Virus record (IMG/VR): IMGVR_UViG_3300023184_000025
Span: 62,001-126,000 of that record
Strand: one strand, 5' to 3'
Length of the DNA stretch: 64,000 nt
Each line of letters begins with the position of its first letter. Position 1 is the stretch's first letter. The position numbers were made by a program, and so were the translations under genes. Below are positions 3,721 through 22,379 of the stretch, piece by piece. Under the pieces are notes generated by a model. That model saw only the letters and a program-made list of their open reading frames with translations. It searched no databases and had not been told where the DNA came from.

Positions 3721-3950
3721 CCAAATGCTTTTACTAGCCCTGTGAGCCCAATAATTACACTTACAAAGTTAACAAACATCTGTGGTTTATTTGCAACACG
3801 GATTGTCCATATTAAAAATAAGATAGTTCCCACAAAAAATGTAAGGATATTGTAAGGATATGCCGCAGGTCCAACGGCGTTTAAGCTGTGGCCTGCAACA
3901 ATAAACAGGGCTCCAGCCCACTGTAGTATTTCGTTAGTATCTAATTTCAT
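3717..3950 (-). CDS. Small three-TM membrane protein (PnuC half-like)
   Basis: Three hydrophobic segments. Confidence 0.6.
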   Translation of the reverse strand: MKLDTNEILQWAGALFIVAGHSLNAVGPAAYPYNILTFFVGTILFLIWTIRVANKPQMFVNFVSVIIGLTGLVKAFG

Positions 3951-3956
3951 GTTATT

Positions 3957-3985
3957 ATTATAGCAAAATGGTAATTATTGGTCAA
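3957..3985 (-). promoter_or_regulatory. Early promoter TTGACC-N17-TATAAT
   Basis: Repeated promoter family. Confidence 0.85.
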
Positions 3986-4038
3986 CCAAAATTTGTTGTG
4001 AAAAAACAACAAGAATTTAATAAAATTTACCCATTTTG

Positions 4039-12530: not shown

Positions 12531-13132
12531 TTTTTATCAAACAGTAAACTTGACGCAACAATTAGTACAGTCTGTGCTAACTCTACTTCTGTTGGTTGCT
12601 CTTTCCAACCTACACTTATTTGTCCTATAAACAATCCAGGGTCTGCTGGCACGCTTATGCGACACATGTATGTTACTCCATAGTTTTTATAAGTAAATCC
12701 AATATAACTTTGTGGTGTTAGATACGGACCGCATGGAATTTTGCCTGACATTAATCCAATTACATCTTCGTTGTTGCTGTGATTCTTAGTAAGCAACCCC
12801 ACATTGGTTCCATCATGGACTGTGTCATGTCCTGAGCCTCGTGTAGTTAGATATACTAATTTTCTGGTGTTCAGTAATGTGTTAACTTGGAATACAGCCA
12901 CAAGCTCTGCATCTGTATTCTTTAGTATAAAATTGACTGCTTGTTCATATTTGCCGTTCATCTTGGGCAAGGCCTGTTGAGCACGATAACTTGCCATGAA
13001 GTTATCTTTTTCAGTATAGGCTACCCATCCTAAAAAAGTGAATAGGCAAAGGAACACAACTGTAAATAGGCGAAATGGACTTTCGCCTATAAACTTTAAC
13101 AGTTCAAGCAGTAACTCTTTAAGTTTGTCCAC
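12527..13132 (-). CDS. T4 holin T-like protein (N-terminal TM plus periplasmic GAF-like domain)
   Basis: Size, topology and pattern similarity to T4 T, aligned by eye from memory. Confidence 0.5.
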   Translation of the reverse strand: MDKLKELLLELLKFIGESPFRLFTVVFLCLFTFLGWVAYTEKDNFMASYRAQQALPKMNGKYEQAVNFILKNTDAELVAVFQVNTLLNTRKLVYLTTRGSGHDTVHDGTNVGLLTKNHSNNEDVIGLMSGKIPCGPYLTPQSYIGFTYKNYGVTYMCRISVPADPGLFIGQISVGWKEQPTEVELAQTVLIVASSLLFDKK

Positions 13133-14396
13133 CGGCAGTTACCTCTTTGTCGCATACAAATGCTGTGACTGCTACGTTGCCGTGTACATGACTTGCTGTG
13201 CGAATCATATCCATTAATGGATCAACTGCTATCAACAATACCAATACAGCTTCGCTTGGTAGTTTTAACAAATCACAAACAACTGCTACAGTAGCAACTG
13301 TTAAGATACCTGTTGTACCTGCACTTGCTAATCCGGCTAAAATACTACCAAACAATACAACTGCTAAACCGGTAAGTCCTAGAGGAGCATCATAGATGTT
13401 GGCAATGAATACTGTAGCAATAGCATAGTAAACAATGCTACCAATACGGTTAACAGTGAAACTTAGTGGAACTGTTAGTTCAACTCCACCTTTGTCAAAA
13501 TGTAGTTTATGTAAGGCTTCTTGTGCGTATGGAATACAAGCCAATGAACTACGTGAACTAATAGCAACAATTAATGTTTCTTTAGTTTCACGGATAACAG
13601 TGGCAAGGCTTAATCCACTACGTGCCCAAATCACAGCAGTACCTGCGGCAACTACTAATAGTCCGCCAATGAACTGTTGGAACACAAAGTCAAACATTGT
13701 TAAGAAAATACCAACTCCAACTTTACCAACTTGACTGCTGATCATTGCCAACAATGCAAATGGTAGGAAGTAGTTTAAGAATTTGAAAATACTAATACTT
13801 GCTTGTTGAACACTCTTCAGTACTTCAACCAACATACGTTGTCCTTCTGTTTTCAAGTGACCCAGTGCAACTCCAAATATCAAACAGAAGATAACAATCT
13901 TCAAACTTTCACCATTGTTCAGTGTGGCAAAAATGTTTTCTGGGATAAACTTCTCTGCCATTTTACCAGCACTGACTGCGGGTGCCGTTGACATTGGTTC
14001 GTGAAGGGTAATGTTTAATTCAGTTCCGGTATCTTTGTTGTTGACTAGTACACCAAATTCTGTTTTCTTCTCAGGAGTCATTTCTGTACCTGTTACTAGT
14101 ACAGTTCCTACACCAATAACAGCAGCCAAGAACATACTGCCAACAAAGCCCACAATAATTTTGCGAATTAATTCCTGACTACCTTCTTTTTGTAATAGCC
14201 CAATGATACCAACTAGAATAGTTGCTAACAAAAATGGTAGTACAACTACCTTTAGCAAACTAATATAGATACTACCAATACTGTCAAGACCCATACTAAA
14301 CTCAGGTGCGTAAACGCCGCCTAAAATACCTGCGATAATTGATCCTAAAATAGTCCAAGGACTAGTCAGGAAACTTTTTAAATGTGTTGTTGTCAT
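13119..14396 (-). CDS. Dicarboxylate/amino acid:cation symporter (DAACS, GltP family)
   Basis: IPENIF, SSRSS hairpin-1 motif, DMIRT TM8 motif. Confidence 0.9.
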   Translation of the reverse strand: MTTTHLKSFLTSPWTILGSIIAGILGGVYAPEFSMGLDSIGSIYISLLKVVVLPFLLATILVGIIGLLQKEGSQELIRKIIVGFVGSMFLAAVIGVGTVLVTGTEMTPEKKTEFGVLVNNKDTGTELNITLHEPMSTAPAVSAGKMAEKFIPENIFATLNNGESLKIVIFCLIFGVALGHLKTEGQRMLVEVLKSVQQASISIFKFLNYFLPFALLAMISSQVGKVGVGIFLTMFDFVFQQFIGGLLVVAAGTAVIWARSGLSLATVIRETKETLIVAISSRSSLACIPYAQEALHKLHFDKGGVELTVPLSFTVNRIGSIVYYAIATVFIANIYDAPLGLTGLAVVLFGSILAGLASAGTTGILTVATVAVVCDLLKLPSEAVLVLLIAVDPLMDMIRTASHVHGNVAVTAFVCDKEVTAGGQT

Positions 14397-14405
14397 GCTA
14401 AATCC

Positions 14406-15239
14406 TTATTTCTTTTCAGCTTTGTAGCGATCCATTAACTTTTTAGTGTCAATGTTGTTGTATTCATTCTTAATAACGTAATTAACAATGCTTAACAATT
14501 GAATCGATTTGGGATTTACTGCTACTGCAATATAGTCCACGCTGTCACTAATTGCAATTGTTTTGGTACTAATTGCGGCATCTGGCTTTTCGAAGGCAAT
14601 TTTCTTAATTTCAAATTCGTCACGGTAAGCGGCAGCAATAGTGCCCTTGGTAACATTATCAATAATCACATCCCATTTTTCTTCAGGAATAAATGTTGCG
14701 TTAGGAAAGTTAATACGAGCAAATGTGTCGTAGCTGGAATTCTTGATAAAACTTATCTTGCCATTGAAGTCACGGATAACTTGATATGTTTCTTTACCTT
14801 GACTGTTTTGACTTAGCCATAGACGATTAACAATTAAACTTTGTCTTAGCTTAACATAAGGATCACTGAATCTAACTACTTGTAGTCGAGGACCAGTTAC
14901 TGACAGTTTACTAACTGCAATGTCTGCTTTGCCTTCTCTGATCTGTTCAACAACTTCAGCAAAGCTTTCTGCATCGCGTCTGAACTGCACAGGAACTCCA
15001 AGTAGGACACCAATTCGTCGAGCTATCTCGACGTCAAGACCATGAATGTTATCCCCTTCTCCGGAGAAGAAAGGAGGAACATCTTTTTTGGTCATTGACA
15101 CAACAAGAACATTAGCTTTCTTGATTGCGGCAATATCTGAAGGTAGTGGTACTGTTGAGTTAGCCAGCTGTGCTTGTCCCGTTGCCGGGGTAGTCCACAG
15201 GGTAACTAGTACGGATAGTAATAATAGTAGTTTTTTCAT
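14406..15239 (-). CDS. Periplasmic amino-acid-binding protein (SBP family 3)
   Basis: Signal peptide; PPF, GLDVEIA, GKADIA, FSDPY motifs. Confidence 0.9.
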   Translation of the reverse strand: MKKLLLLLSVLVTLWTTPATGQAQLANSTVPLPSDIAAIKKANVLVVSMTKKDVPPFFSGEGDNIHGLDVEIARRIGVLLGVPVQFRRDAESFAEVVEQIREGKADIAVSKLSVTGPRLQVVRFSDPYVKLRQSLIVNRLWLSQNSQGKETYQVIRDFNGKISFIKNSSYDTFARINFPNATFIPEEKWDVIIDNVTKGTIAAAYRDEFEIKKIAFEKPDAAISTKTIAISDSVDYIAVAVNPKSIQLLSIVNYVIKNEYNNIDTKKLMDRYKAEKK

Positions 15240-15244
15240 AATTA

Positions 15245-15252
15245 TATTTATA
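15245..15252 (-). promoter_or_regulatory. T4-like late promoter TATAAATA
   Basis: Exact T4 late consensus 5 nt before the ATG. Confidence 0.65.
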
Positions 15253-15319
15253 GTCAAATGTCCAGGACATACTTGCATTATGCCGAACAGTATCTAATAG
15301 AATTGTTGATTTAAAGAAT

Positions 15320-15346
15320 AAAAAAAGAGCCTTTTTTGGGGCTCTT
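15320..15346 (-). terminator. Intrinsic terminator
   Basis: AAGAGCC/GGCTCTT stem plus U run. Confidence 0.75.
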
Positions 15347-15427: not shown

Positions 15428-16084
15428 TTACTTTCCTAATAATGTATCAACTTTAGCTTCAGCGGCGTCTAAACGTGCTTCAATAGCATCTAGTGCTGAA
15501 TTTGAAGGAATAGCAACTGCTTCAACAACTTGTTGAACTACTTCAGGAGCAACAGCTTCAACACCTGTTGCGGCAGCAATAACTTCGGCAACTGCTTCAG
15601 CAACTTGTTGTGCTACTTCGGCGGCCGGAGCTGGCATGTCAGCCACTGCTTGCATGATAGCTTCTGTGATTGCAATCGGGTCAACTACAACCTCTGGGTC
15701 GGCGGCGACGACTGCTTGAACTGCGGCTGAAATGATGTCAGCAACTTCTTCATGAGCAACTGCTTCTGATTCAACTTGTGCTGTAATAACGTCAGCAACA
15801 ATGTCAGCGGCTTCTGCGTGGTCAGCACTTGGAGAAAGTGCAACTACTTCTGCAACTGCGCTTTGAATGCTTTCAACTGCTTGTGCCGCTGCCGCAACAA
15901 TAGCGTCAACGTGTTCTTGAGTTTTTACAGCAATTAATTGCTCTACTTGAACTTCAACAACGGATAATCTTGCGTCTAGTTCTTCAATACTAGTAGCACC
16001 GTCTGTATTAACTGTTGTACCGGTTAAATTTGCTAATTTGGCTTCTACGGCTACTAATCTTGTAGCTAAATCATCTAATCTCAT
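15428..16084 (-). CDS. Acidic Ala/Val/Glu-rich helical protein with coiled-coil ends
   Basis: No F/W/Y/C; strong SD AAGGAG. Confidence 0.75.
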   Translation of the reverse strand: MRLDDLATRLVAVEAKLANLTGTTVNTDGATSIEELDARLSVVEVQVEQLIAVKTQEHVDAIVAAAAQAVESIQSAVAEVVALSPSADHAEAADIVADVITAQVESEAVAHEEVADIISAAVQAVVAADPEVVVDPIAITEAIMQAVADMPAPAAEVAQQVAEAVAEVIAAATGVEAVAPEVVQQVVEAVAIPSNSALDAIEARLDAAEAKVDTLLGK

Positions 16085-16148
16085 GGGTTTCTCCTTGTGG
16101 GGTTAGTTTGTGTGCCACCATGACACATAATTATTTAACAGATATTAT

Positions 16149-16166
16149 GTGACAGTGATGTTACAA
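16149..16166 (-). promoter_or_regulatory. Pho box TTGTAAC-ATCA-CTGTCAC
   Basis: Two 7-mers at 11-bp period matching CTGTCAY. Confidence 0.6.
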
Positions 16167-16167
16167 A

Positions 16168-16890
16168 TCACGACCAATATTTAGATGAGTCCAAACTATC
16201 CCAATATTTTTTATTGTTGCGATTTGCAAAGTTCTTGACAAGATACTTGGCCATGCCCATGTATCCCATTTTCTTAAACCTGCGCGAATCTTGGCCAAAG
16301 TGGTGTCGAACAATTCGAAACTTTCTAGGGCTGTATTTCCTAGATAAAAAGTAATCTTCCGACGTTGAAAACTGTTCAGGAAATCCTCCAAACTCCTCAA
16401 AACGATCTCTGCGGGTCAGCATGAATGCTCCCACAGCAAATGGACTAATGTATTTCAACACATGATTGATTAGGTTAAATGCTGTGAACCCAATCTTGGC
16501 ACGTAGGTCCTTGTCATAGCATTTAATATTGAGTCCAATAAGATCTAAATTTTTACGCTCAATTAAATTAACTGCATCACGTATAACCGTAGGTTTAAAG
16601 AAGCGAACATCAGCATCAATAAACAAGATGTAAGGTGTAGTTACCAGTCGTGCTCCACAATTTTTAGCAAAGGAAACAGGCCCACCATCTATGATTTCTA
16701 CATTCAAATTGCCCTTTGTTGCTTGGATAACTTCACGGGTATTGTCAGTTGAGCAGTCTGCAATAATAATTCTAGTGCTACCTATCATTTGATTGCGCAG
16801 ATGTGTTAGAAGATAGGAAATATAGTTTTCCTCATTCTTACAAGGAATCACAATAGTAATTTTATCACTGAATTTTATTGTTTCTTGCAT
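16168..16890 (-). CDS. Glycosyltransferase family 2
   Basis: IVIPCKNEE, DCSTD, FIDAD, SED motifs. Confidence 0.9.
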   Translation of the reverse strand: MQETIKFSDKITIVIPCKNEENYISYLLTHLRNQMIGSTRIIIADCSTDNTREVIQATKGNLNVEIIDGGPVSFAKNCGARLVTTPYILFIDADVRFFKPTVIRDAVNLIERKNLDLIGLNIKCYDKDLRAKIGFTAFNLINHVLKYISPFAVGAFMLTRRDRFEEFGGFPEQFSTSEDYFLSRKYSPRKFRIVRHHFGQDSRRFKKMGYMGMAKYLVKNFANRNNKKYWDSLDSSKYWS

Positions 16891-17045
16891 TCTGCTACCA
16901 CCTTAAAATTGTCAAACTTCAGTTTGTACTTAATTGTATTTAATGTCTGCAGGCAAGAGTGTTGATCCAGGAAAGTCAATTCTATCCGTCCCGGAACGTC
17001 CTGAGGATTGTTTACGTGAACTGCCAGTATTATCAGTATCCACAC
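16875..17045 (-). CDS. Small protein (56 aa, not in the ORF track)
   Basis: GTG start with SD AAGGAG; MWILIILAVHVNNPQDVPGRIEL...ECKKQ. Confidence 0.55.
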   Translation of the reverse strand: MWILIILAVHVNNPQDVPGRIELTFLDQHSCLQTLNTIKYKLKFDNFKVVAECKKQ

Positions 17046-17793
17046 GGTCTTTCTCCTTGGTCCATGTAACTATTTCCCATGTACCATCGTGGTGTTCTAC
17101 CAGTGCTGTACAACTTTCAACCCAGTCGCCATCATTCATATACGCAACACCATCTATGGTTTTTATTTCAGCGTGATGTATGTGTCCACAGATCACACCG
17201 TCAAACCCACGCTTCTTGCAGTAAGCGGCAAGATTCTGTTCAAATTTGAATATAAAGTCTACGGCTTTTTTTACTTTGTGTTTAAGATACTTACTAAGAC
17301 TAAAGTACCCAAAACCCATGCGATGACGGATCCAATTGAATTTGCTATTAAGCGATAAAATAATGTCATATGCTTTGTCTCCTAAAAATGCTAGCCATGG
17401 TGCCAGTCTGGTAATGCCATCAAACAGGTCACCGTGTGTGACTAGATAGTGCTTGCCGTTGGCACCTATATGTTCGATTTGATTGTGTATTTCTACATGA
17501 CCAAAACTAAAACCATACGGTATCATGGGTCTTAGAAACTCATCGTGGTTGCCTGCTATATAAACAACACGGGTGCCACGCTTGGCATGACCCAGAACTC
17601 TTCGTACTACATTGGTGTGGCTTTGCTTCCAACGCCATTTGTTTTGTTGTATGCGCCAGGCATCAATGATATCCCCTACCAAATATAATGTGTCGCAGGA
17701 ATTGTGTTTGAGAAAGTTGTTTAACTTATCCGCTTGACAGTCTTTGGTACCAAGATGAACATCGCTGACAAAGATACTGCGGTATGTCTTCAT
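16930..17793 (-). CDS. PlcP/LpxH-like metallophosphoesterase
   Basis: SDVHLG, GDIID, GNHD, HGD, CGHIH, GDWVES motifs. Confidence 0.85.
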   Translation of the reverse strand: MKTYRSIFVSDVHLGTKDCQADKLNNFLKHNSCDTLYLVGDIIDAWRIQQNKWRWKQSHTNVVRRVLGHAKRGTRVVYIAGNHDEFLRPMIPYGFSFGHVEIHNQIEHIGANGKHYLVTHGDLFDGITRLAPWLAFLGDKAYDIILSLNSKFNWIRHRMGFGYFSLSKYLKHKVKKAVDFIFKFEQNLAAYCKKRGFDGVICGHIHHAEIKTIDGVAYMNDGDWVESCTALVEHHDGTWEIVTWTKEKDRVDTDNTGSSRKQSSGRSGTDRIDFPGSTLLPADIKYN

Positions 17794-17824
17794 CTATTAT
17801 TTAAGATAAAGACTAACAAAGATC

Positions 17825-17842
17825 ATTACAATTTTATTACAA
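17825..17842 (-). promoter_or_regulatory. Pho box-like TTGTAAT-AAAA-TTGTAAT
   Basis: 11-bp period direct repeat upstream of the plcP-like gene. Confidence 0.55.
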
Positions 17843-17844
17843 AA

Positions 17845-18594
17845 TCATACTCTTGTTGATATTTTAGCCAACTTTAAAAAGCCAAATAATTTAAGATACA
17901 TCCATCCAACGTCAAATTCAAACCAGCGTCGACTCAGACGAGGATTGCCTGGATCAAGGTGATGGTTATTGTGTAGTTCTTCACCACCAATGACAATTCC
18001 CCAAGGACTGAAGTTACGACTATGATCTTTGGTTACGCCATTTCTGTACCCTATCCAATGCCCAACACCGTTGACAACACCTGCGGCCCAGAATGGAATC
18101 CATAACATCTGAACTCCCCACACTACAAATCCCCACCAGCTGAAACAAAGTAAATTTATGCCCAATAGCAAAGTAATTCCTAAACGACTGTGTGCGGAAT
18201 ATATGTTGTGTTCTATCCAATCATCCGGGGTTCCAACACCATAGGCATTGACCATGTTTGTATCTTTGCTTGCTGAATGATATAATCCTGCTCCTTTGAA
18301 TAACACATGCCAGAATCCATAAACATGCGGAGAGTGAGGATCGCCTTCTGCATCACTATGTCTGTGATGTTTGCGATGTATTGCTACCCACTGTTTGGTA
18401 ACCATGCCTGTTGTCAACCATAACCAGGCTCGCATAAAATGTTCAAGTATCGGATTGAATTCTATTCCCCGATGCGCTTGGCCACGATGTAAAAATAAAG
18501 TAACACATACTATGGTAATATGTGTCGCTGTCAATGTGTATATTAGTGCTATCATGTAGTATATAGCTGACAAAAATAGTGCTACATATAGCAC
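17845..18594 (-). CDS. desA: Membrane fatty-acid (delta-9-type) desaturase
   Basis: His boxes HRGQAH, HRKHH, HNNHH. Confidence 0.9.
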   Translation of the reverse strand: MLYVALFLSAIYYMIALIYTLTATHITIVCVTLFLHRGQAHRGIEFNPILEHFMRAWLWLTTGMVTKQWVAIHRKHHRHSDAEGDPHSPHVYGFWHVLFKGAGLYHSASKDTNMVNAYGVGTPDDWIEHNIYSAHSRLGITLLLGINLLCFSWWGFVVWGVQMLWIPFWAAGVVNGVGHWIGYRNGVTKDHSRNFSPWGIVIGGEELHNNHHLDPGNPRLSRRWFEFDVGWMYLKLFGFLKLAKISTRV

Positions 18595-18609: not shown

Positions 18610-18897
18610 CTAAGCAAGCATCCTAATCAGGCCAATACTGTCAATGGTGGTTAGCAATAGGTAGTTAGCCAACATGCCAAATGATTTCCTAGTATAAGCA
18701 GCCCAAGCATAGAGAGCGCAGCCAGCAATCCAAATAGGGTACAGAATAAGTAGAGGCGGAGTTGGGACTGTTGTTGCCATAGTAATGGAACAGCCAATGC
18801 TAATAGCCCAAGCGAGCAACTCAATAACAAAACGAATTCTATTAGACTTAAAGTCATCTTGTATCCAATCAAATGTAGGTTTTAAAAGTTCATTCAT
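18610..18897 (-). CDS. Small three-TM membrane protein
   Basis: Hydrophobic; ATGA overlap. Confidence 0.7.
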   Translation of the reverse strand: MNELLKPTFDWIQDDFKSNRIRFVIELLAWAISIGCSITMATTVPTPPLLILYPIWIAGCALYAWAAYTRKSFGMLANYLLLTTIDSIGLIRMLA

Positions 18898-19952
18898 GAT
18901 TTGTTGGGGAAAAAATCCTGCATCACACCTTCTCTGTGCAGGTCAAGTGTTACACAATGTATGCCACCGTCCCAAAAATATCTATGTCTAAACGGCACAA
19001 TGTGAGGAGTAATACCATATCTATCCAAGGCATCAAACACTTGTTTGTTGTAGTTAAACACCATGACATTCTTGGGATCAATAATCAACATGTTGACATC
19101 AAACACAGTTTCTTCTACGTATCCTGTCCAATGTCCCAGCCAGGTTTCAATAGTTTCAATTACATCATTGTCGTATTCAAAACCTGGGATCCACCACTTG
19201 CCGCGATTTTTTTGTTTTAAATCTAAAAATGGTTTAACCTTGCTCCAACTTTGGTCTTGAAGATACACCACTTCCCATCCAGGAAAAGTTTTTTCATAAG
19301 TGGGGATGTCACACAAACTAATAATCAATCCAGGACAAACAGGGCAGAATACGCCATCGGCATGACCACCAGTTTTAACTATATGATTTCTTGTATGTAA
19401 AAAATTTTCATTAATTTCTTTTTCAAGATTTCTTACTTGATCTATATTGGGCATTGTTCCAAAATATAAATCTTTTCCTATCCTAGATATCATTGCACCA
19501 TTGATAGTTGGGTGATTACTTATTTTAATTTGATTGCCCTGAGATTGTACATGTTTTACAATATCTCCATAACAGTCTTGCATGGTGGCAGTTAGCTGAC
19601 TGCTATTCCACGTGCTGATATTTGTGTTAGAACCGAGAAACATTTCTGAATCTGGCTTAGATGTATAAAAATCTTCTCCAGCCATGATCATAATATCCCT
19701 CGGACACATTGGTGGTGGAATATATCTTTCGCCTAATATTTTTTCTGTAGGAAAATTAGGCCTTAGTATCTCTACTCCAAATTCTTGCAATTTTTCGATT
19801 ATGTGCTGGTAATCTTCTTCTGTTTCGGTGGCTATTTTTTCCATGAGTTTACGCACATGTGTTACCTTAATCCATGAATAAAATTCAGGTGGGTAGCTAC
19901 GACCTACTACACAAACTTTCAAAGGATCCCAGTGTTGGTACACACTATACAT
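18894..19952 (-). CDS. Amidinotransferase (glycine/inosamine amidinotransferase family), copy 2
   Basis: WDPLKVCVVG, CPRD, GHADG, GGIHCVT motifs. Confidence 0.85.
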   Translation of the reverse strand: MYSVYQHWDPLKVCVVGRSYPPEFYSWIKVTHVRKLMEKIATETEEDYQHIIEKLQEFGVEILRPNFPTEKILGERYIPPPMCPRDIMIMAGEDFYTSKPDSEMFLGSNTNISTWNSSQLTATMQDCYGDIVKHVQSQGNQIKISNHPTINGAMISRIGKDLYFGTMPNIDQVRNLEKEINENFLHTRNHIVKTGGHADGVFCPVCPGLIISLCDIPTYEKTFPGWEVVYLQDQSWSKVKPFLDLKQKNRGKWWIPGFEYDNDVIETIETWLGHWTGYVEETVFDVNMLIIDPKNVMVFNYNKQVFDALDRYGITPHIVPFRHRYFWDGGIHCVTLDLHREGVMQDFFPNKS

Positions 19953-19980: not shown

Positions 19981-20031
19981 GTTAAAGTTATCTTGAATAC
20001 ATTCAGGTGTGGGCTTTAGTAGTTCATTCAT
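19945..20031 (-). CDS. 28-aa chimeric ORF at the duplication junction
   Basis: MNELLKPTPECIQDNFN + SEQVYERHVNV. Confidence 0.55.
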   Translation of the reverse strand: MNELLKPTPECIQDNFNSEQVYERHVNV

Positions 20032-21167
20032 TTTTTATTTGGAAAAAAGTCTTGCATCACACCTTCTCTGTGTAGATCAAGTGTTACACAGTGGATGCCG
20101 CCGTCCCAGAAATATCTGTGTCTAAAATTAATAACGTGTGGAGTAATTCCATATCTACTTAGTGCTTCAAACACGCGATCGTTGTAATTGAACACAATGA
20201 CATTTTTTGGATCAATAATCAGCATGTTGACGTCAAACACAGTTTCCTCAACATACCCGGTCCAATGTCCTAGCCAATTTTCTACAACATCAACCACATT
20301 CTGATCGTATTCAAAACCCGGTATCCACCATTTACCGTTGTTTTTGGCTTTTAAATCTTTGAATGGTTTAATGTGGTCCCAACTCTGTCCTGGGAGATAA
20401 ACAACTTCCCAGCCTGGAAAAGTTTCTGCATAAGTTGGTACATCTTTTAAACTAATAATTAGTCCAGGACAAACCGGACAGTAAACAGCATCTCCGTGAC
20501 CACCGGTATTGATAACATGTGTACGATTATTTGGAAACTCTTGGTTGACCACTTGTTTGATCTTGTTCTGATCGTCAGTGTACGATTCTGTGGCAAAGTA
20601 TAAGTCTTTACCAATTCGAGATGCCATCATTCCTTGCACACAGGGATGAGGACTGGTCTTTATTATATTACCCTGTGATCGAATACGATCAAATATTTTT
20701 TTATAAGGGGAGTGATGACGAAATACTTCTTCTTTGCTTGCATCAAGCCAATTGTGTACTTCAAGGCATTCCTGTTGTACATGACTTGGTAAATCAGTGA
20801 TGTCTACTGATTTTTCTGGCCAGCTTGGATCTTTAACTACGTTATAGAATTCTTCCCACTGATTTTTTGGTCTATAAAATGTCTCACCAATCATAACCAT
20901 AATGTCTCTGGGTTGCAGAGGAGGAGGTGTAAAAGGAGTCCTTGTCTGATTAAACCATTCTACAGGAATCTCAGGACGCAATACCTCTACACCAAAAGTT
21001 TCTAGCACCGTTGCAATTTTTTGCAGATCTTCTTCTGTTTCAATGGCAATACGCTCAAACAGTCTGCGCACATGTGGGACTTTGATCCAGTTATAGAACT
21101 CAGGTGGGTAGCTACGACCTACTACACAAACTTTTAATGGGTCCCAGTGTTGGTACACACTATACAT
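20028..21167 (-). CDS. Amidinotransferase, copy 1
   Basis: Same motifs; paralog of 18894-19952. Confidence 0.85.
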   Translation of the reverse strand: MYSVYQHWDPLKVCVVGRSYPPEFYNWIKVPHVRRLFERIAIETEEDLQKIATVLETFGVEVLRPEIPVEWFNQTRTPFTPPPLQPRDIMVMIGETFYRPKNQWEEFYNVVKDPSWPEKSVDITDLPSHVQQECLEVHNWLDASKEEVFRHHSPYKKIFDRIRSQGNIIKTSPHPCVQGMMASRIGKDLYFATESYTDDQNKIKQVVNQEFPNNRTHVINTGGHGDAVYCPVCPGLIISLKDVPTYAETFPGWEVVYLPGQSWDHIKPFKDLKAKNNGKWWIPGFEYDQNVVDVVENWLGHWTGYVEETVFDVNMLIIDPKNVIVFNYNDRVFEALSRYGITPHVINFRHRYFWDGGIHCVTLDLHREGVMQDFFPNKK

Positions 21168-22179
21168 TTACATGTCTTTCATAAACCTGTTCACTAGCCA
21201 GGTTCTTGCCTTTGGCTTCGCATTGAATATCAAATGTATCAGCAAAGGTCAATGCCCAATCGGTCACAGCGTCGTTCCAATAGAAGTCACTGTGTGCCCG
21301 GAGTTTCTGTTTCTTATAACCTCTAGCAAGAAGTTTATCAAGATCGGGTCTAGTTCCTCGGTCATGGTCAACCAAAAGGTCCTCGCGACTAACACTATAA
21401 TGAAGTGCAGGACGAGCGCCGCGCCAAGAGTCAATAACCCGCTTGACACGATCGTCCTGCGCGGTAATGTACTCTCCCGAGTTAATCCAGTGGTGGTGTA
21501 GGTCCAATACAAGAGCCACATGCTGAGCCACAGCCAAAGTAGTGTCAAGTCCATTTGTCATCTCATCATTCTCGATGGTAATTAAGTTTCTTGCTTCGGG
21601 GCTGAGCCTACTCAGAGTCTGCAAGAATTTAGCGGCACCACCTTTACCGCTCAAGTGTACGTTGATCTTGAACCCGTTGTCATGCCATGTGTTACCATAG
21701 CCCATCCACCGTGCCATATCAGCGTGGTATTCAAATTCCAGGATTGAACGTTCTACAATTTCATCTGCTTCGCTTGCTAGTACACAAAACTGGCCAGGAT
21801 GGAAACTCAAACGCACACCGTATTTACGTGCGGCTTCGCCTACGGGGGCAAAGATCTTTGCACAGTGATCTTGAATTTCTTGCCGTTGCCACCAGGCAAT
21901 CCATGATGGTTCAGTATAGCCCTGGAGCATTTCGCTACCGAGACGAACCATTCTACGTTCAGGGGGTAGTGTGGCTACACGTTCGATCATCCGCACAGCC
22001 GCCGATGTATTGTGATTCATGATATCCCATTGGCGTTGGTCTGCTTCGTCCGCATGCTCACGAAGCCACCTCATGGTAGTTGATCTGCCGTTTAGGTCAC
22101 GGTCTTTTGCGTTAACTTTCATACCGCCACATTCTGTGGGGTCATTAAGCCATTTGCAACAAAATCCAATTCGTCCCAT
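21160..22179 (-). CDS. uvsE: UV damage endonuclease
   Basis: RLSFHPGQF, NVH, IENDE, LDLHHH, AHSD, EAKGK motifs. Confidence 0.9.
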   Translation of the reverse strand: MGRIGFCCKWLNDPTECGGMKVNAKDRDLNGRSTTMRWLREHADEADQRQWDIMNHNTSAAVRMIERVATLPPERRMVRLGSEMLQGYTEPSWIAWWQRQEIQDHCAKIFAPVGEAARKYGVRLSFHPGQFCVLASEADEIVERSILEFEYHADMARWMGYGNTWHDNGFKINVHLSGKGGAAKFLQTLSRLSPEARNLITIENDEMTNGLDTTLAVAQHVALVLDLHHHWINSGEYITAQDDRVKRVIDSWRGARPALHYSVSREDLLVDHDRGTRPDLDKLLARGYKKQKLRAHSDFYWNDAVTDWALTFADTFDIQCEAKGKNLASEQVYERHVNV

Positions 22180-22187
22180 AGTGGCTC

Positions 22188-22379
22188 CTACCATTGATGA
22201 ATAACGTTAACACAAATAAAGAAACATGTGATTATATGTATGATAACCCAAAATGTCTTAAGGAAAAGCGCAATTCTAGCTTCACGCAAAGAAAGAATGG
22301 GAACATCGGGTCGATCTTCATCTGTCTGGCCCATCAAATGCCCAGTGGCTCTGGACCAGATGCGTTCAAGTGAATTCAC
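22188..22379 (-). CDS. Small membrane protein
   Basis: C-terminal TM; SD AGGA. Confidence 0.65.
   Translation of the reverse strand: MNSLERIWSRATGHLMGQTDEDRPDVPILSLREARIALFLKTFWVIIHIITCFFICVNVIHQW

Follow-up and report, generated by a model that had tools for sequence, protein, structure and literature searches.

PlcP and phosphate-responsive lipid renovation

In phosphorus-starved proteobacteria, membrane phospholipids are replaced by glycolipids through PlcP, an LpxH-like phospholipase C, and a glycosyltransferase, both under the control of PhoB. PlcP–Agt operons of this kind include those of S. meliloti (SMc00171), Phaeobacter (MED193_17359), SAR11 HTCC7211 (PB7211_983/960), and P. aeruginosa (PA3219-PA3218) (PMC4796936, PMC8528852). 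PlcP is a calcineurin-like metallophosphoesterase that hydrolyzes phospholipids to diacylglycerol (DAG) and a phospho-head group; its gene is linked to one that consumes DAG (agt, pgt or btaAB), and its known role is phosphorus sparing (PMC4796936). Agt is a retaining GT4 enzyme of the GT-B fold that acts as a DAG glucosyl/glucuronosyl transferase. The promoters of such genes carry a Pho box, that is, two 7-bp direct repeats of CTGTCAT type with a 4-bp spacer, which lies about 10 bp upstream of the −10 element and replaces the −35.

Phages are also known to exploit the Pho response of their hosts. Cyanophages carry phosphorus genes (pstS, phoA) behind a host PhoB site, so that they are expressed only in phosphorus-starved hosts (PMC10976474); such genes were reportedly also treated by Zeng and Chisholm (2012). 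Known phage answers to phosphorus limitation are uptake genes and phosphatases behind Pho boxes. The locus considered here differs from the cyanophage genes in that its motif is of the proteobacterial (CTGTCAT-like) rather than the cyanobacterial type, and in that its cargo is a predicted lipid phosphodiesterase plus a glycosyltransferase rather than an uptake protein or phosphatase.

Organization of the locus

The locus lies in a 64,000-nucleotide stretch of DNA (hereafter, the window) from a 345,154-bp lake-water virus record, IMGVR_UViG_3300023184_000025. The record is 99% complete by CheckV's estimate and encodes ribonucleotide reductase, DNA ligase, a DnaB-like helicase, and a protein matching tail-spike/pre-neck-appendage families; it is a jumbo phage of lytic type. 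A megablast search of 8 kb against GenBank phages gave no match. A first-pass annotation of the window described a desaturase, a Pho box-like repeat, a PlcP-like phosphoesterase, a 56-aa protein, and a GT2 glycosyltransferase, and this observation is confirmed: all five elements are present on the minus strand, exactly within 16168-18594. All features described below are likewise on the minus strand.

The first gene, at 17845..18594, encodes a short membrane fatty-acid desaturase (249 aa) of predicted DesA type. It matches PF00487 at 1.2e-12 and carries three His boxes (HRGQAH, HRKHH, HNNHH), but its score on the NCBIfam DesA profile NF049918 is 378 bits against a cut-off of 400, and the match covers profile positions 9-240 of 385, the C-terminal third of the profile being absent. 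Although the gene immediately precedes the Pho box, it lies outside Pho control. In relatives it has no Pho motif upstream (best matrix score 3 or less) and no fixed synteny, and it is therefore regarded as a neighbor rather than as part of the regulated unit.

The phosphoesterase is of PlcP type

The phosphoesterase gene (plcP; 16930..17793) encodes a PF00149 protein with a conserved core (residues 1-250) and an unconstrained tail of the last ~37 residues. The metal ligands (DxH, GD, GNHD, H, GHxH) are complete, and D11, H13, D41, N82, H83, H120, H204, and H206 are invariant across 41 homologues. The first-pass annotation had named grouping with LpxH, the UDP-2,3-diacylglucosamine diphosphatase of lipid A synthesis, as an outcome that would overturn its reading, and this outcome was not found. 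The protein scores 43.9 and 34.2 bits on the two curated LpxH models (NF003743 and TIGR01854), whose cut-offs are 134 and 190 bits, respectively. Scores on the LpxH model are bimodal, with true LpxH proteins at 213-361 bits, paralogues at 36-55 bits, and the phage protein at 43-44 bits. In a tree of 87 sequences, LpxH (18 sequences) and PlcP-like proteins (69) split with 100% SH-aLRT support, and the 15 phage sequences form one clade inside the PlcP-like group, together with paralogues that coexist with true LpxH in the same genomes.

This placement is also supported by gene neighborhoods. The phage protein is 47-58% identical to its nearest bacterial homologues, which are proteobacterial, and 56 of 80 of those loci hold an Agt-like GT4 within 5 kb; in the nine such downstream genes scanned, the GT4 directly follows plcP. 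The upstream regions of the bacterial genes are enriched in CTGTCAT-N4-CTGTCAT (34% against 4% in background windows), which matches the published PlcP–Agt operons. The predicted structure (pLDDT 85) shares with LpxH the calcineurin-like fold, an inserted helical lipid-binding cap, and identical metal-ligand motifs, and its best 25 matches in the PDB are all LpxH. However, identity to these structures is only 16-20%.

Two Pho box-like promoters

The 51-nt intergenic region upstream of plcP holds TTGTAAT-AAAA-TTGTAAT at 17825..17842, two 7-bp direct repeats 11 bp apart (box 1). This exact repeat is unique in the 345-kb genome. On a matrix built only from relatives it scores 24.3 bits, against maxima of 15.5-19.8 in 12 simulated genomes. 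A strict pattern matches at the same position in 43 of 63 distinct relatives' upstream regions, and most of the rest hold near-matches, despite different upstream genes and flanking sequence. Several relatives have the canonical TTGTCAC-N4-TTGTCAC. The box is followed by an invariant TAAATA, a putative −10, at 17798..17803, 4 nt before the plcP ATG. There is no Shine-Dalgarno sequence, which implies a leaderless or near-leaderless mRNA. In relatives, TAAATA sits 11 nt (most) or 21-22 nt after the box and 4-7 nt before the ATG; in the window, the distance from box 1 is 21 nt, one helical turn more than in most relatives, with a weak third half-site in between. A generic sigma-70 scan gave no more hits than in shuffled sequence.

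A second copy of the motif, missed by the first-pass annotation, is found at 16149..16166 (box 2; TTGTAAC-ATCA-CTGTCAC), beginning 1 nt after the GT2 stop codon. Its matrix score alone (19.4 bits) is within reach of chance, since 3 of 12 simulations gave 19.1 or more, and only the composite architecture and its conservation make it significant. Box 1 and box 2 are the only two composite sites (box, then 11 nt, then TAAATA) in the genome, and none occurred in 10 simulated genomes. The TAAATA of the second promoter (16132..16137), also a putative −10, lies 11 nt after box 2 and is invariant in an alignment of 8 loci. A predicted hairpin (16110..16126; GUGUCAU-GGU-GGCACAC) lies near the 5ʹ end of the leader; its energy, −7.4 kcal/mol, is not exceptional, but the stem is kept in relatives through paired changes (GTGCC/GGCAC against GTACC/GGTAC). 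The gene downstream (15428..16084) has a normal Shine-Dalgarno sequence (AAGGAGA) and encodes a 218-aa acidic, Ala/Val/Glu-rich protein without a match to any Pfam, NCBIfam or PHROG family; the Atlas holds only viral clusters like it. The homologous gene carries the motif in 8 of 9 distinct relatives. The unit ends at an intrinsic terminator (15325..15346), the only convincing minus-strand terminator between 15200 and 19100.

The same composite motif precedes all 13 distinct upstream regions of phage pstS in related loci, the pstS products scoring 393-398 bits on NF008171 against a cut-off of 339. In its conserved position and its presence before phage pstS, the repeat behaves as a Pho box. 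In several relatives the genes form a pstS-plcP operon, although the present genome has no pstS. The genome encodes no winged-helix OmpR-type regulator, so a host factor must read the motif.

A small overlapping gene and the glycosyltransferase slot

Between plcP and the glycosyltransferase gene is a 56-aa ORF (16875..17045) that overlaps the plcP tail by 116 nt and the GT2 start by 16 nt. It has a GTG start here and ATG in relatives, a hydrophobic N-terminus, and two invariant Cys. The ORF is a real gene, selected in its own frame: it is open in 60 of 60 distinct relatives, variation peaks at its third codon positions (1.05 against 0.47 bits), and amino-acid identity is 63% in its frame against 38% in the plcP-tail frame, where 17 of 60 carry a stop. 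Searches of the Atlas, Pfam, NCBIfam, and PHROG returned no informative family; the Atlas holds clusters of 56-62-aa hypothetical proteins like it, and those with recorded taxa are viral. Prediction of a complex between PlcP and the 56-aa protein scored 0.18, below the threshold for an answer, and counts neither for nor against binding.

The glycosyltransferase gene (16168..16890) encodes a small, soluble-type GT2 enzyme (240 aa) of predicted GT-A fold (model pLDDT 82) with a DxSxD motif, a DAD motif, and a basic C-terminal amphipathic helix. It matches PF00535 (2e-19, 70 bits) and PF13506 (GT21; 27.6 bits, above its cut-off), and D45, S47, D49, D92, D94, E178, and D179 are invariant. The enzyme is not Agt, and the genome has no Agt homologue. 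Among 83 related phage loci, 64 have the GT2 and 18 have instead an Agt-like GT4 that is 41% identical to bacterial Agt, at the same overlap with the small ORF; none has both. This slot exchange is the only evidence for a DAG acceptor. Beyond the shared GT-A fold, the GT2 has no detectable kinship to any characterized DAG glycosyltransferase. Foldseek searches returned generic GT2 matches, including lipid-acceptor enzymes, without pointing to an acceptor. They included the cyanobacterial beta-monoglucosyl-DAG synthase (Q8YMK0, Q3MB01) at TM 0.67-0.68. Compared with GT2/GT21 lipid glycosyltransferases such as this synthase and the GT21 Pgt, the phage enzyme shares the GT-A fold and DXD motif but is about half the size and has no transmembrane segments, and the similarity is no better than to many non-DAG GT2 enzymes.

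None of the 80 bacterial plcP loci has a homologue of the GT2, the small ORF or the desaturase nearby, and a search for the GT2 in five proteobacterial genomes that carry plcP gave only marginal hits. Bacterial homologues of the GT2 (25-35% identity) were found in 12 of 401 Pseudomonadota genomes; they are not next to plcP, and five sit next to DedA/VTT-LssY_C membrane proteins. Word-indexed homologue searches for PlcP and the GT2 were swamped by near-identical phage relatives and gave no bacterial context. The nearest "bacterial" sister (L086) lies on a 348-kb contig and is probably a mis-binned phage.

Proposed function and alternatives

The cassette is best explained, with a probability of roughly 0.6, as a phage-borne lipid-renovation unit controlled by host PhoB. 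In this view, phosphorylated PhoB in a phosphorus-starved host would bind the two Pho boxes, which would stand in place of a −35 element upstream of the TAAATA elements. The first promoter would make a leaderless or near-leaderless mRNA for plcP, the 56-aa gene, and the GT2, and the second an mRNA with a leader for the 218-aa acidic protein. PlcP, a membrane-lipid-directed metallophosphoesterase of the LpxH superfamily, is predicted to cut phospholipids into DAG and a phospho-head group, from which host phosphatases could release phosphate for the phage. The GT2 would then most likely glycosylate the DAG, or another membrane lipid, so that the bilayer is refilled with a phosphorus-free lipid, a job that an Agt-type GT4 would do in sister phages. 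The analysis itself establishes the family placement of PlcP, the conservation and genome-wide specificity of the promoter motif and its link to phage pstS, the reality of the small gene, and the exchange of GT2 and GT4 in one slot. By contrast, PhoB binding and activation, expression (a search for RNA sequencing runs holding the sequence listed none), phospholipase C activity, the GT2 acceptor, and any benefit to the phage are inferred. The interpretation of the first-pass annotation is thus partly supported: its PlcP assignment, its Pho box, and its attribution to a phage held, whereas use of DAG by the GT2, the feeding of freed phosphorus into DNA synthesis, and preservation of the membrane remain inference, and the desaturase falls outside the module.

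Relative to the bacterial operons, the phage cassette retains an enzyme of the same clade, the order of phosphoesterase followed by glycosyltransferase, and an upstream Pho box. It differs in that Agt is replaced by a GT-A enzyme of a normally inverting family, in that a conserved 56-aa gene is wedged between the two genes and overlaps both, and in that the plcP message appears leaderless. A further possibility, tentative but not ruled out, is that the GT2, perhaps together with the 56-aa protein, is a previously unrecognized minimal inverting DAG glycosyltransferase that has displaced Agt in an abundant group of lake jumbo phages. The phage would then run a complete phospholipid-to-glycolipid conversion under host PhoB control to pay the phosphorus cost of a genome that holds about 690,000 phosphates per copy.

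Of the alternatives, the one that survives best, though doubtful, retains the promoter and PlcP as above but has the GT2 make another lipid-linked sugar, such as a polyprenyl-phosphate hexose, or modify envelope glycans, so that phosphorus release would be combined with surface modification rather than lipid replacement. This is consistent with the pairing of the bacterial GT2 homologues with DedA/VTT-LssY_C proteins, with fold matches to dolichyl- and undecaprenyl-phosphate glycosyltransferases (AglE/AglI, HVO_1613, GtrB, ArnC) at scores equal to those of the monoglucosyl-DAG synthase, and with weak GtrB-like hits in PHROG. However, the gene occupies exactly the slot held by Agt-like GT4 in sister phages, its model lacks the C-terminal transmembrane helices of GtrB and ArnC, and no partner flippase or GtrC-type gene lies in the unit.

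It is less likely that the cassette remodels the membrane for a purpose other than phosphorus supply, such as blocking superinfection by changing surface lipids, or supplying or altering lipids for jumbo-phage infection structures or lysis, with phosphate starvation only the cue. Lipid renovation alters phage adsorption in P. aeruginosa and Ruegeria (PMC9804370, PMC9938194), a desaturase and other membrane genes cluster nearby, and this genome lacks pstS. Nonetheless, the sharing of the motif with pstS in relatives, and the pstS-plcP operons of several, tie the cassette to phosphorus acquisition, as does the phosphorus-sparing role of PlcP.

It is unlikely that the repeat is the site of another OmpR-family response regulator or of a phage factor, marking a temporal class rather than phosphate control. 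Direct repeats spaced about 11 bp apart are common to OmpR-family sites, the half-sites of the window (TGTAAT) differ from the E. coli TGTCAT at one core base, and the assignment to PhoB rests on sequence alone. However, only two sites exist in 345 kb, which is not the pattern of a class-wide promoter, several relatives have the canonical repeat, every phage pstS examined carries the motif, and the phage encodes no OmpR-type protein. Finally, a phage LpxH that would modify lipopolysaccharide together with the GT2, as suggested by JGI and GenBank, which name the homologues UDP-2,3-diacylglucosamine hydrolase, and by the LpxH matches in the PDB, is very improbable given the low profile scores, the fully supported branch that separates the protein from 18 bona fide LpxH sequences, and its low identity to LpxH structures.

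Implications for phage phosphorus acquisition and annotation

Phosphorus often limits lake and ocean microbes, and a large phage genome is phosphorus-expensive. If the proposed function is correct, the cassette would add a third route to uptake genes and phosphatases, namely tapping the host's own membrane phospholipids, with a phosphorus-free lipid made in exchange. The motif also defines a small, clean putative phage Pho regulon (the plcP operon, pstS, and the acidic protein), which could help find the host.

The finding also bears on annotation. Viral "lpxH" genes that surveys file under lipopolysaccharide synthesis (PMC9611531, PMC10653327), and LpxH-annotated genes in cultured phages, may really be PlcP, which would change how they are counted in viral gene surveys. 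Two such genes, in Pelagibacter phage Mosig EXVC030M (Mosig_00120) and Synechococcus phage S-SRM01, are PlcP-type by BLAST, with 49% and 38% identity to the enzyme of the window and 24% or no hit to LpxH. Neither of the two Mosig papers searched mentions the gene. Neither phage has a glycosyltransferase next to it. In Mosig, the gene lies divergent from a pstS-type gene and is followed by a small overlapping ORF, which is unrelated to that of the window.

Genomic context of the locus

The window corresponds to bases 62001-126000 of a 345,154-bp IMG/VR virus record that CheckV rates as 99% complete. It encodes ribonucleotide reductase, an ATP-dependent DNA ligase, a DnaB-like helicase, and a protein matching tail-spike/pre-neck-appendage families. 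Near-identical DNA occurs in lake-water and freshwater metagenomes from several studies. All genes considered here are on the minus strand, and in order of transcription they comprise a 249-aa DesA-family desaturase with three His boxes (18594..17845; 378 bits on NF049918), a 51-nt spacer, a 287-aa calcineurin-like phosphoesterase (17793..16930), a 56-aa ORF (17045..16875), and a 240-aa GT2 (16890..16168). The first-pass annotation, which had described a desaturase, a Pho box-like repeat, a PlcP-like phosphoesterase, a 56-aa protein, and a GT2, was thus correct in what it observed and where. Its interpretation, a phage lipid-remodeling module under Pho control, was only partly supported.

The phosphoesterase is PlcP-type

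The phosphoesterase scores 43.9 and 34.2 bits on the two curated LpxH models, whose cut-offs are 134 and 190 bits. Across 66 proteobacterial genomes, the LpxH model returns two separate classes: real LpxH proteins, which score 213-361 bits, and a second paralog, which scores 36-55 bits. The phage protein falls in the second class. Limnohabitans, a Pseudomonas, and Amantichitinum each carry both genes, whereas the two alphaproteobacteria searched carry only the paralog. In a maximum-likelihood tree of 87 sequences, 18 LpxH sequences split from 69 PlcP-like sequences with 100% support, and all 15 phage sequences form a single clade, also with 100% support, inside the PlcP-like group. Grouping with LpxH, which had been named in advance as the result that would refute the PlcP assignment, was therefore not observed.

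The nearest homologs in the genome collection are 47-58% identical and come from Alpha-, Beta-, and Gammaproteobacteria. An Agt-like GT4 lies within 5 kb in 56 of those 80 loci and, in the nine downstream genes scanned, directly follows plcP, often overlapping its stop. This is the published plcP-agt arrangement (PMC4796936, PMC8528852; Agt is GT4 according to bioRxiv 10.1101/2021.03.25.437072). Moreover, the upstream regions of these loci are enriched in E. coli-type Pho boxes, which are found with 4 or fewer mismatches in 34% of them as opposed to 4% of background windows. The closest "bacterial" sister of the phage PlcP (L086) lies on a MAG contig of 348,090 bp (JBCCBQ010000005.1), about the size of this phage genome, and is probably a mis-binned jumbo phage rather than a bacterial donor.

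All metal ligands of the phage protein are invariant. Its AlphaFold model (pLDDT 85) shows the phosphoesterase core plus a helical insert at residues 122-194. Although the 25 best PDB matches to this model are all LpxH, they are only 16-20% identical.

A Pho box upstream of plcP

On the coding strand, the spacer reads TTGTAAT-AAAA-TTGTAAT, followed by 21 nt, TAAATA, 4 nt, and the ATG. Among 83 related phage loci, the upstream genes and flanking sequences differ and include a BPL_N gene, a racemase, a terminator, or pstS. Even so, a strict pattern, [N]TG[TC][AC]A[TC]-N4-same, matches in 43 of 63 distinct upstream regions, and most of the rest hold near-matches; some relatives have the canonical TTGTCAC-N4-TTGTCAC. 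After 11 nt in most loci, or 21-22 nt in others, the box is followed by an invariant TAAATA that lies 4-7 nt before the ATG, and there is no Shine-Dalgarno sequence. By inference, this arrangement may represent a -10 element and a leaderless or near-leaderless mRNA.

A weight matrix built only from the relatives scores the site in the window at 24.3 bits, whereas 12 simulated genomes peaked at 15.5-19.8 bits. The composite pattern of box, spacing, and TAAATA occurs twice in the real genome and not once in ten simulated genomes. The decisive independent test came from scanning the flanks of the relatives, where the same composite motif precedes a gene that scores 393-398 bits as PstS on NF008171 (cut-off 339 bits) in 13 of 13 distinct upstream regions. 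Furthermore, the relatives that seemed to lack a box in front of plcP have pstS immediately upstream, such that plcP rides on the pstS promoter. The phage encodes no OmpR-type winged-helix protein, so a host factor must read the site. It does encode a PhoH, but no pstS.

A second putative Pho promoter, absent from the first-pass annotation, begins one base after the GT2 stop codon with TTGTAAC-ATCA-CTGTCAC (16166..16149). This box is followed by 11 nt, TAAATA, a 47-nt leader with a hairpin and an AAGGAGA ribosome-binding site, and then a gene for a 218-aa acidic Ala/Val/Glu-rich protein (16084..15428). The homologous gene carries the motif in 8 of 9 distinct relatives, and the protein has no known family. 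The hairpin (16110-16126), near the 5ʹ end of the leader, is kept across relatives (related loci L008, L025, L028, L047, L055, L056, and L070) through paired changes, GTGCC/GGCAC as opposed to GTACC/GGTAC, although its predicted energy is unremarkable. The only convincing terminator on this strand between 15200 and 19100 follows the acidic-protein gene, at 15346..15325.

The desaturase gene, in contrast, sits upstream of the first box. In relatives it has no Pho motif (best score 3 or less), and it occurs at variable positions in 18 of 83 loci. It is therefore a neighboring lipid gene and not part of the regulated unit, although read-through from it into plcP is possible because no terminator intervenes.

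An overlapping small gene

The 56-aa ORF is a real gene. It is open in all 60 distinct relatives, where it starts with ATG rather than the GTG seen here. Variation peaks at its third codon positions (1.05 bits, compared with 0.47 bits at second positions), and mean amino-acid identity is 63% in its own frame but 38% in the overlapping plcP frame. In that plcP frame, 17 of 60 sequences carry a stop, and the plcP stop codon wanders. The conserved part of PlcP therefore ends near residue 250, and its tail is an unconstrained read-on. The small protein has a hydrophobic N-terminus and two invariant cysteines, and it is present whether a GT2 or a GT4 follows; in one relative, a RimK-like ATP-grasp gene is inserted between the small ORF and the GT4 (locus L069, 4901-5791). 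A complex prediction of the small protein with PlcP gave no answer.

The glycosyltransferase

The glycosyltransferase is a GT-A/GT2 enzyme with conserved DxSxD, DAD, and ED motifs and a basic C-terminal amphipathic helix. It is not Agt, and the genome has no Agt homolog. Its bacterial relatives, which are 25-35% identical and were found in 12 of 401 sampled Pseudomonadota genomes, are not near plcP; five are followed by a DedA/VTT-LssY_C membrane protein. Structure searches return many GT2 enzymes with lipid or polyprenyl acceptors, including the cyanobacterial monoglucosyl-DAG synthase, but none stands out. The Pfam GT21 model passes its cut-off, which is treated here only as a weak lead.

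The real argument for a diacylglycerol acceptor comes from gene position. In 18 of 83 related loci, the gene that starts at the same overlap with the small ORF is a GT4 that is 41% identical (E = 5e-83) to a bacterial Agt, and no locus has both a GT2 and a GT4. This non-orthologous replacement in a fixed slot suggests an equivalent function but does not prove one.

Relationship to known systems

The proposed mechanism matches bacterial PlcP-Agt lipid renovation and the principle of cyanophage genes placed behind host Pho boxes (PMC10976474). Whereas the placement of PlcP, the conservation of the promoter motif and its association with phage pstS, the coding status of the small gene, and the exchange of glycosyltransferases rest on the comparisons described here, PhoB binding, phospholipase C activity, the acceptor of the GT2, and the benefit to the phage are all inferred. 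By arithmetic from its length, one genome copy holds 690,308 phosphates, and whether membrane lipid phosphorus matters on that scale would depend on the host.

In the literature searched, no paper was found that describes a phage PlcP, and viral "lpxH" appears only in lists of lipopolysaccharide genes. However, GenBank holds PlcP-type genes annotated as LpxH in Pelagibacter phage Mosig and Synechococcus phage S-SRM01, and neither of the two Mosig papers searched mentions the gene. Phage carriage of plcP is therefore present in the databases but, as far as could be found, unrecognized. What is new here is the full Pho-box operon with a displaced glycosyltransferase and an embedded overlapping gene. 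In Mosig, the plcP-type gene lies next to, and divergent from, a pstS-type gene. The spacer between them (3851-4003 of the Mosig locus, L218) holds a TTTAACA-AAAA-CTTAACA direct repeat with an 11-nt period, and TAAATA lies 5 nt before the plcP ATG, a layout that echoes that of the window but uses a different half-site.

Other genes of the neighborhood

Additional genes flank the unit, likewise on the minus strand. At 13119-15278, the phage encodes a sodium:dicarboxylate-family symporter (PF00375, 219 bits) and a family-3 periplasmic solute-binding protein with a signal peptide. The pair is conserved in two related phage contigs (L002 and L003), and in L002 the binding-protein gene is preceded by a composite Pho-like motif. 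The neighborhoods of the relatives (L002, L003, and a third related contig, L004) hold many host-like genes, namely, TerC, porin, TctC, rubrerythrin/rubredoxin, APS kinase, nitroreductase, Asp/Glu racemase, and carbamoyltransferase. In the window, two tandem paralogs of 352 and 379 aa (18894-19952 and 20028-21167) share the same N-terminus and hit PHROG 25854, and one gives a faint arginine-deiminase-fold hit. At 21160-22194, a 344-aa protein matches PHROG 8420 (endonuclease, 241 bits).
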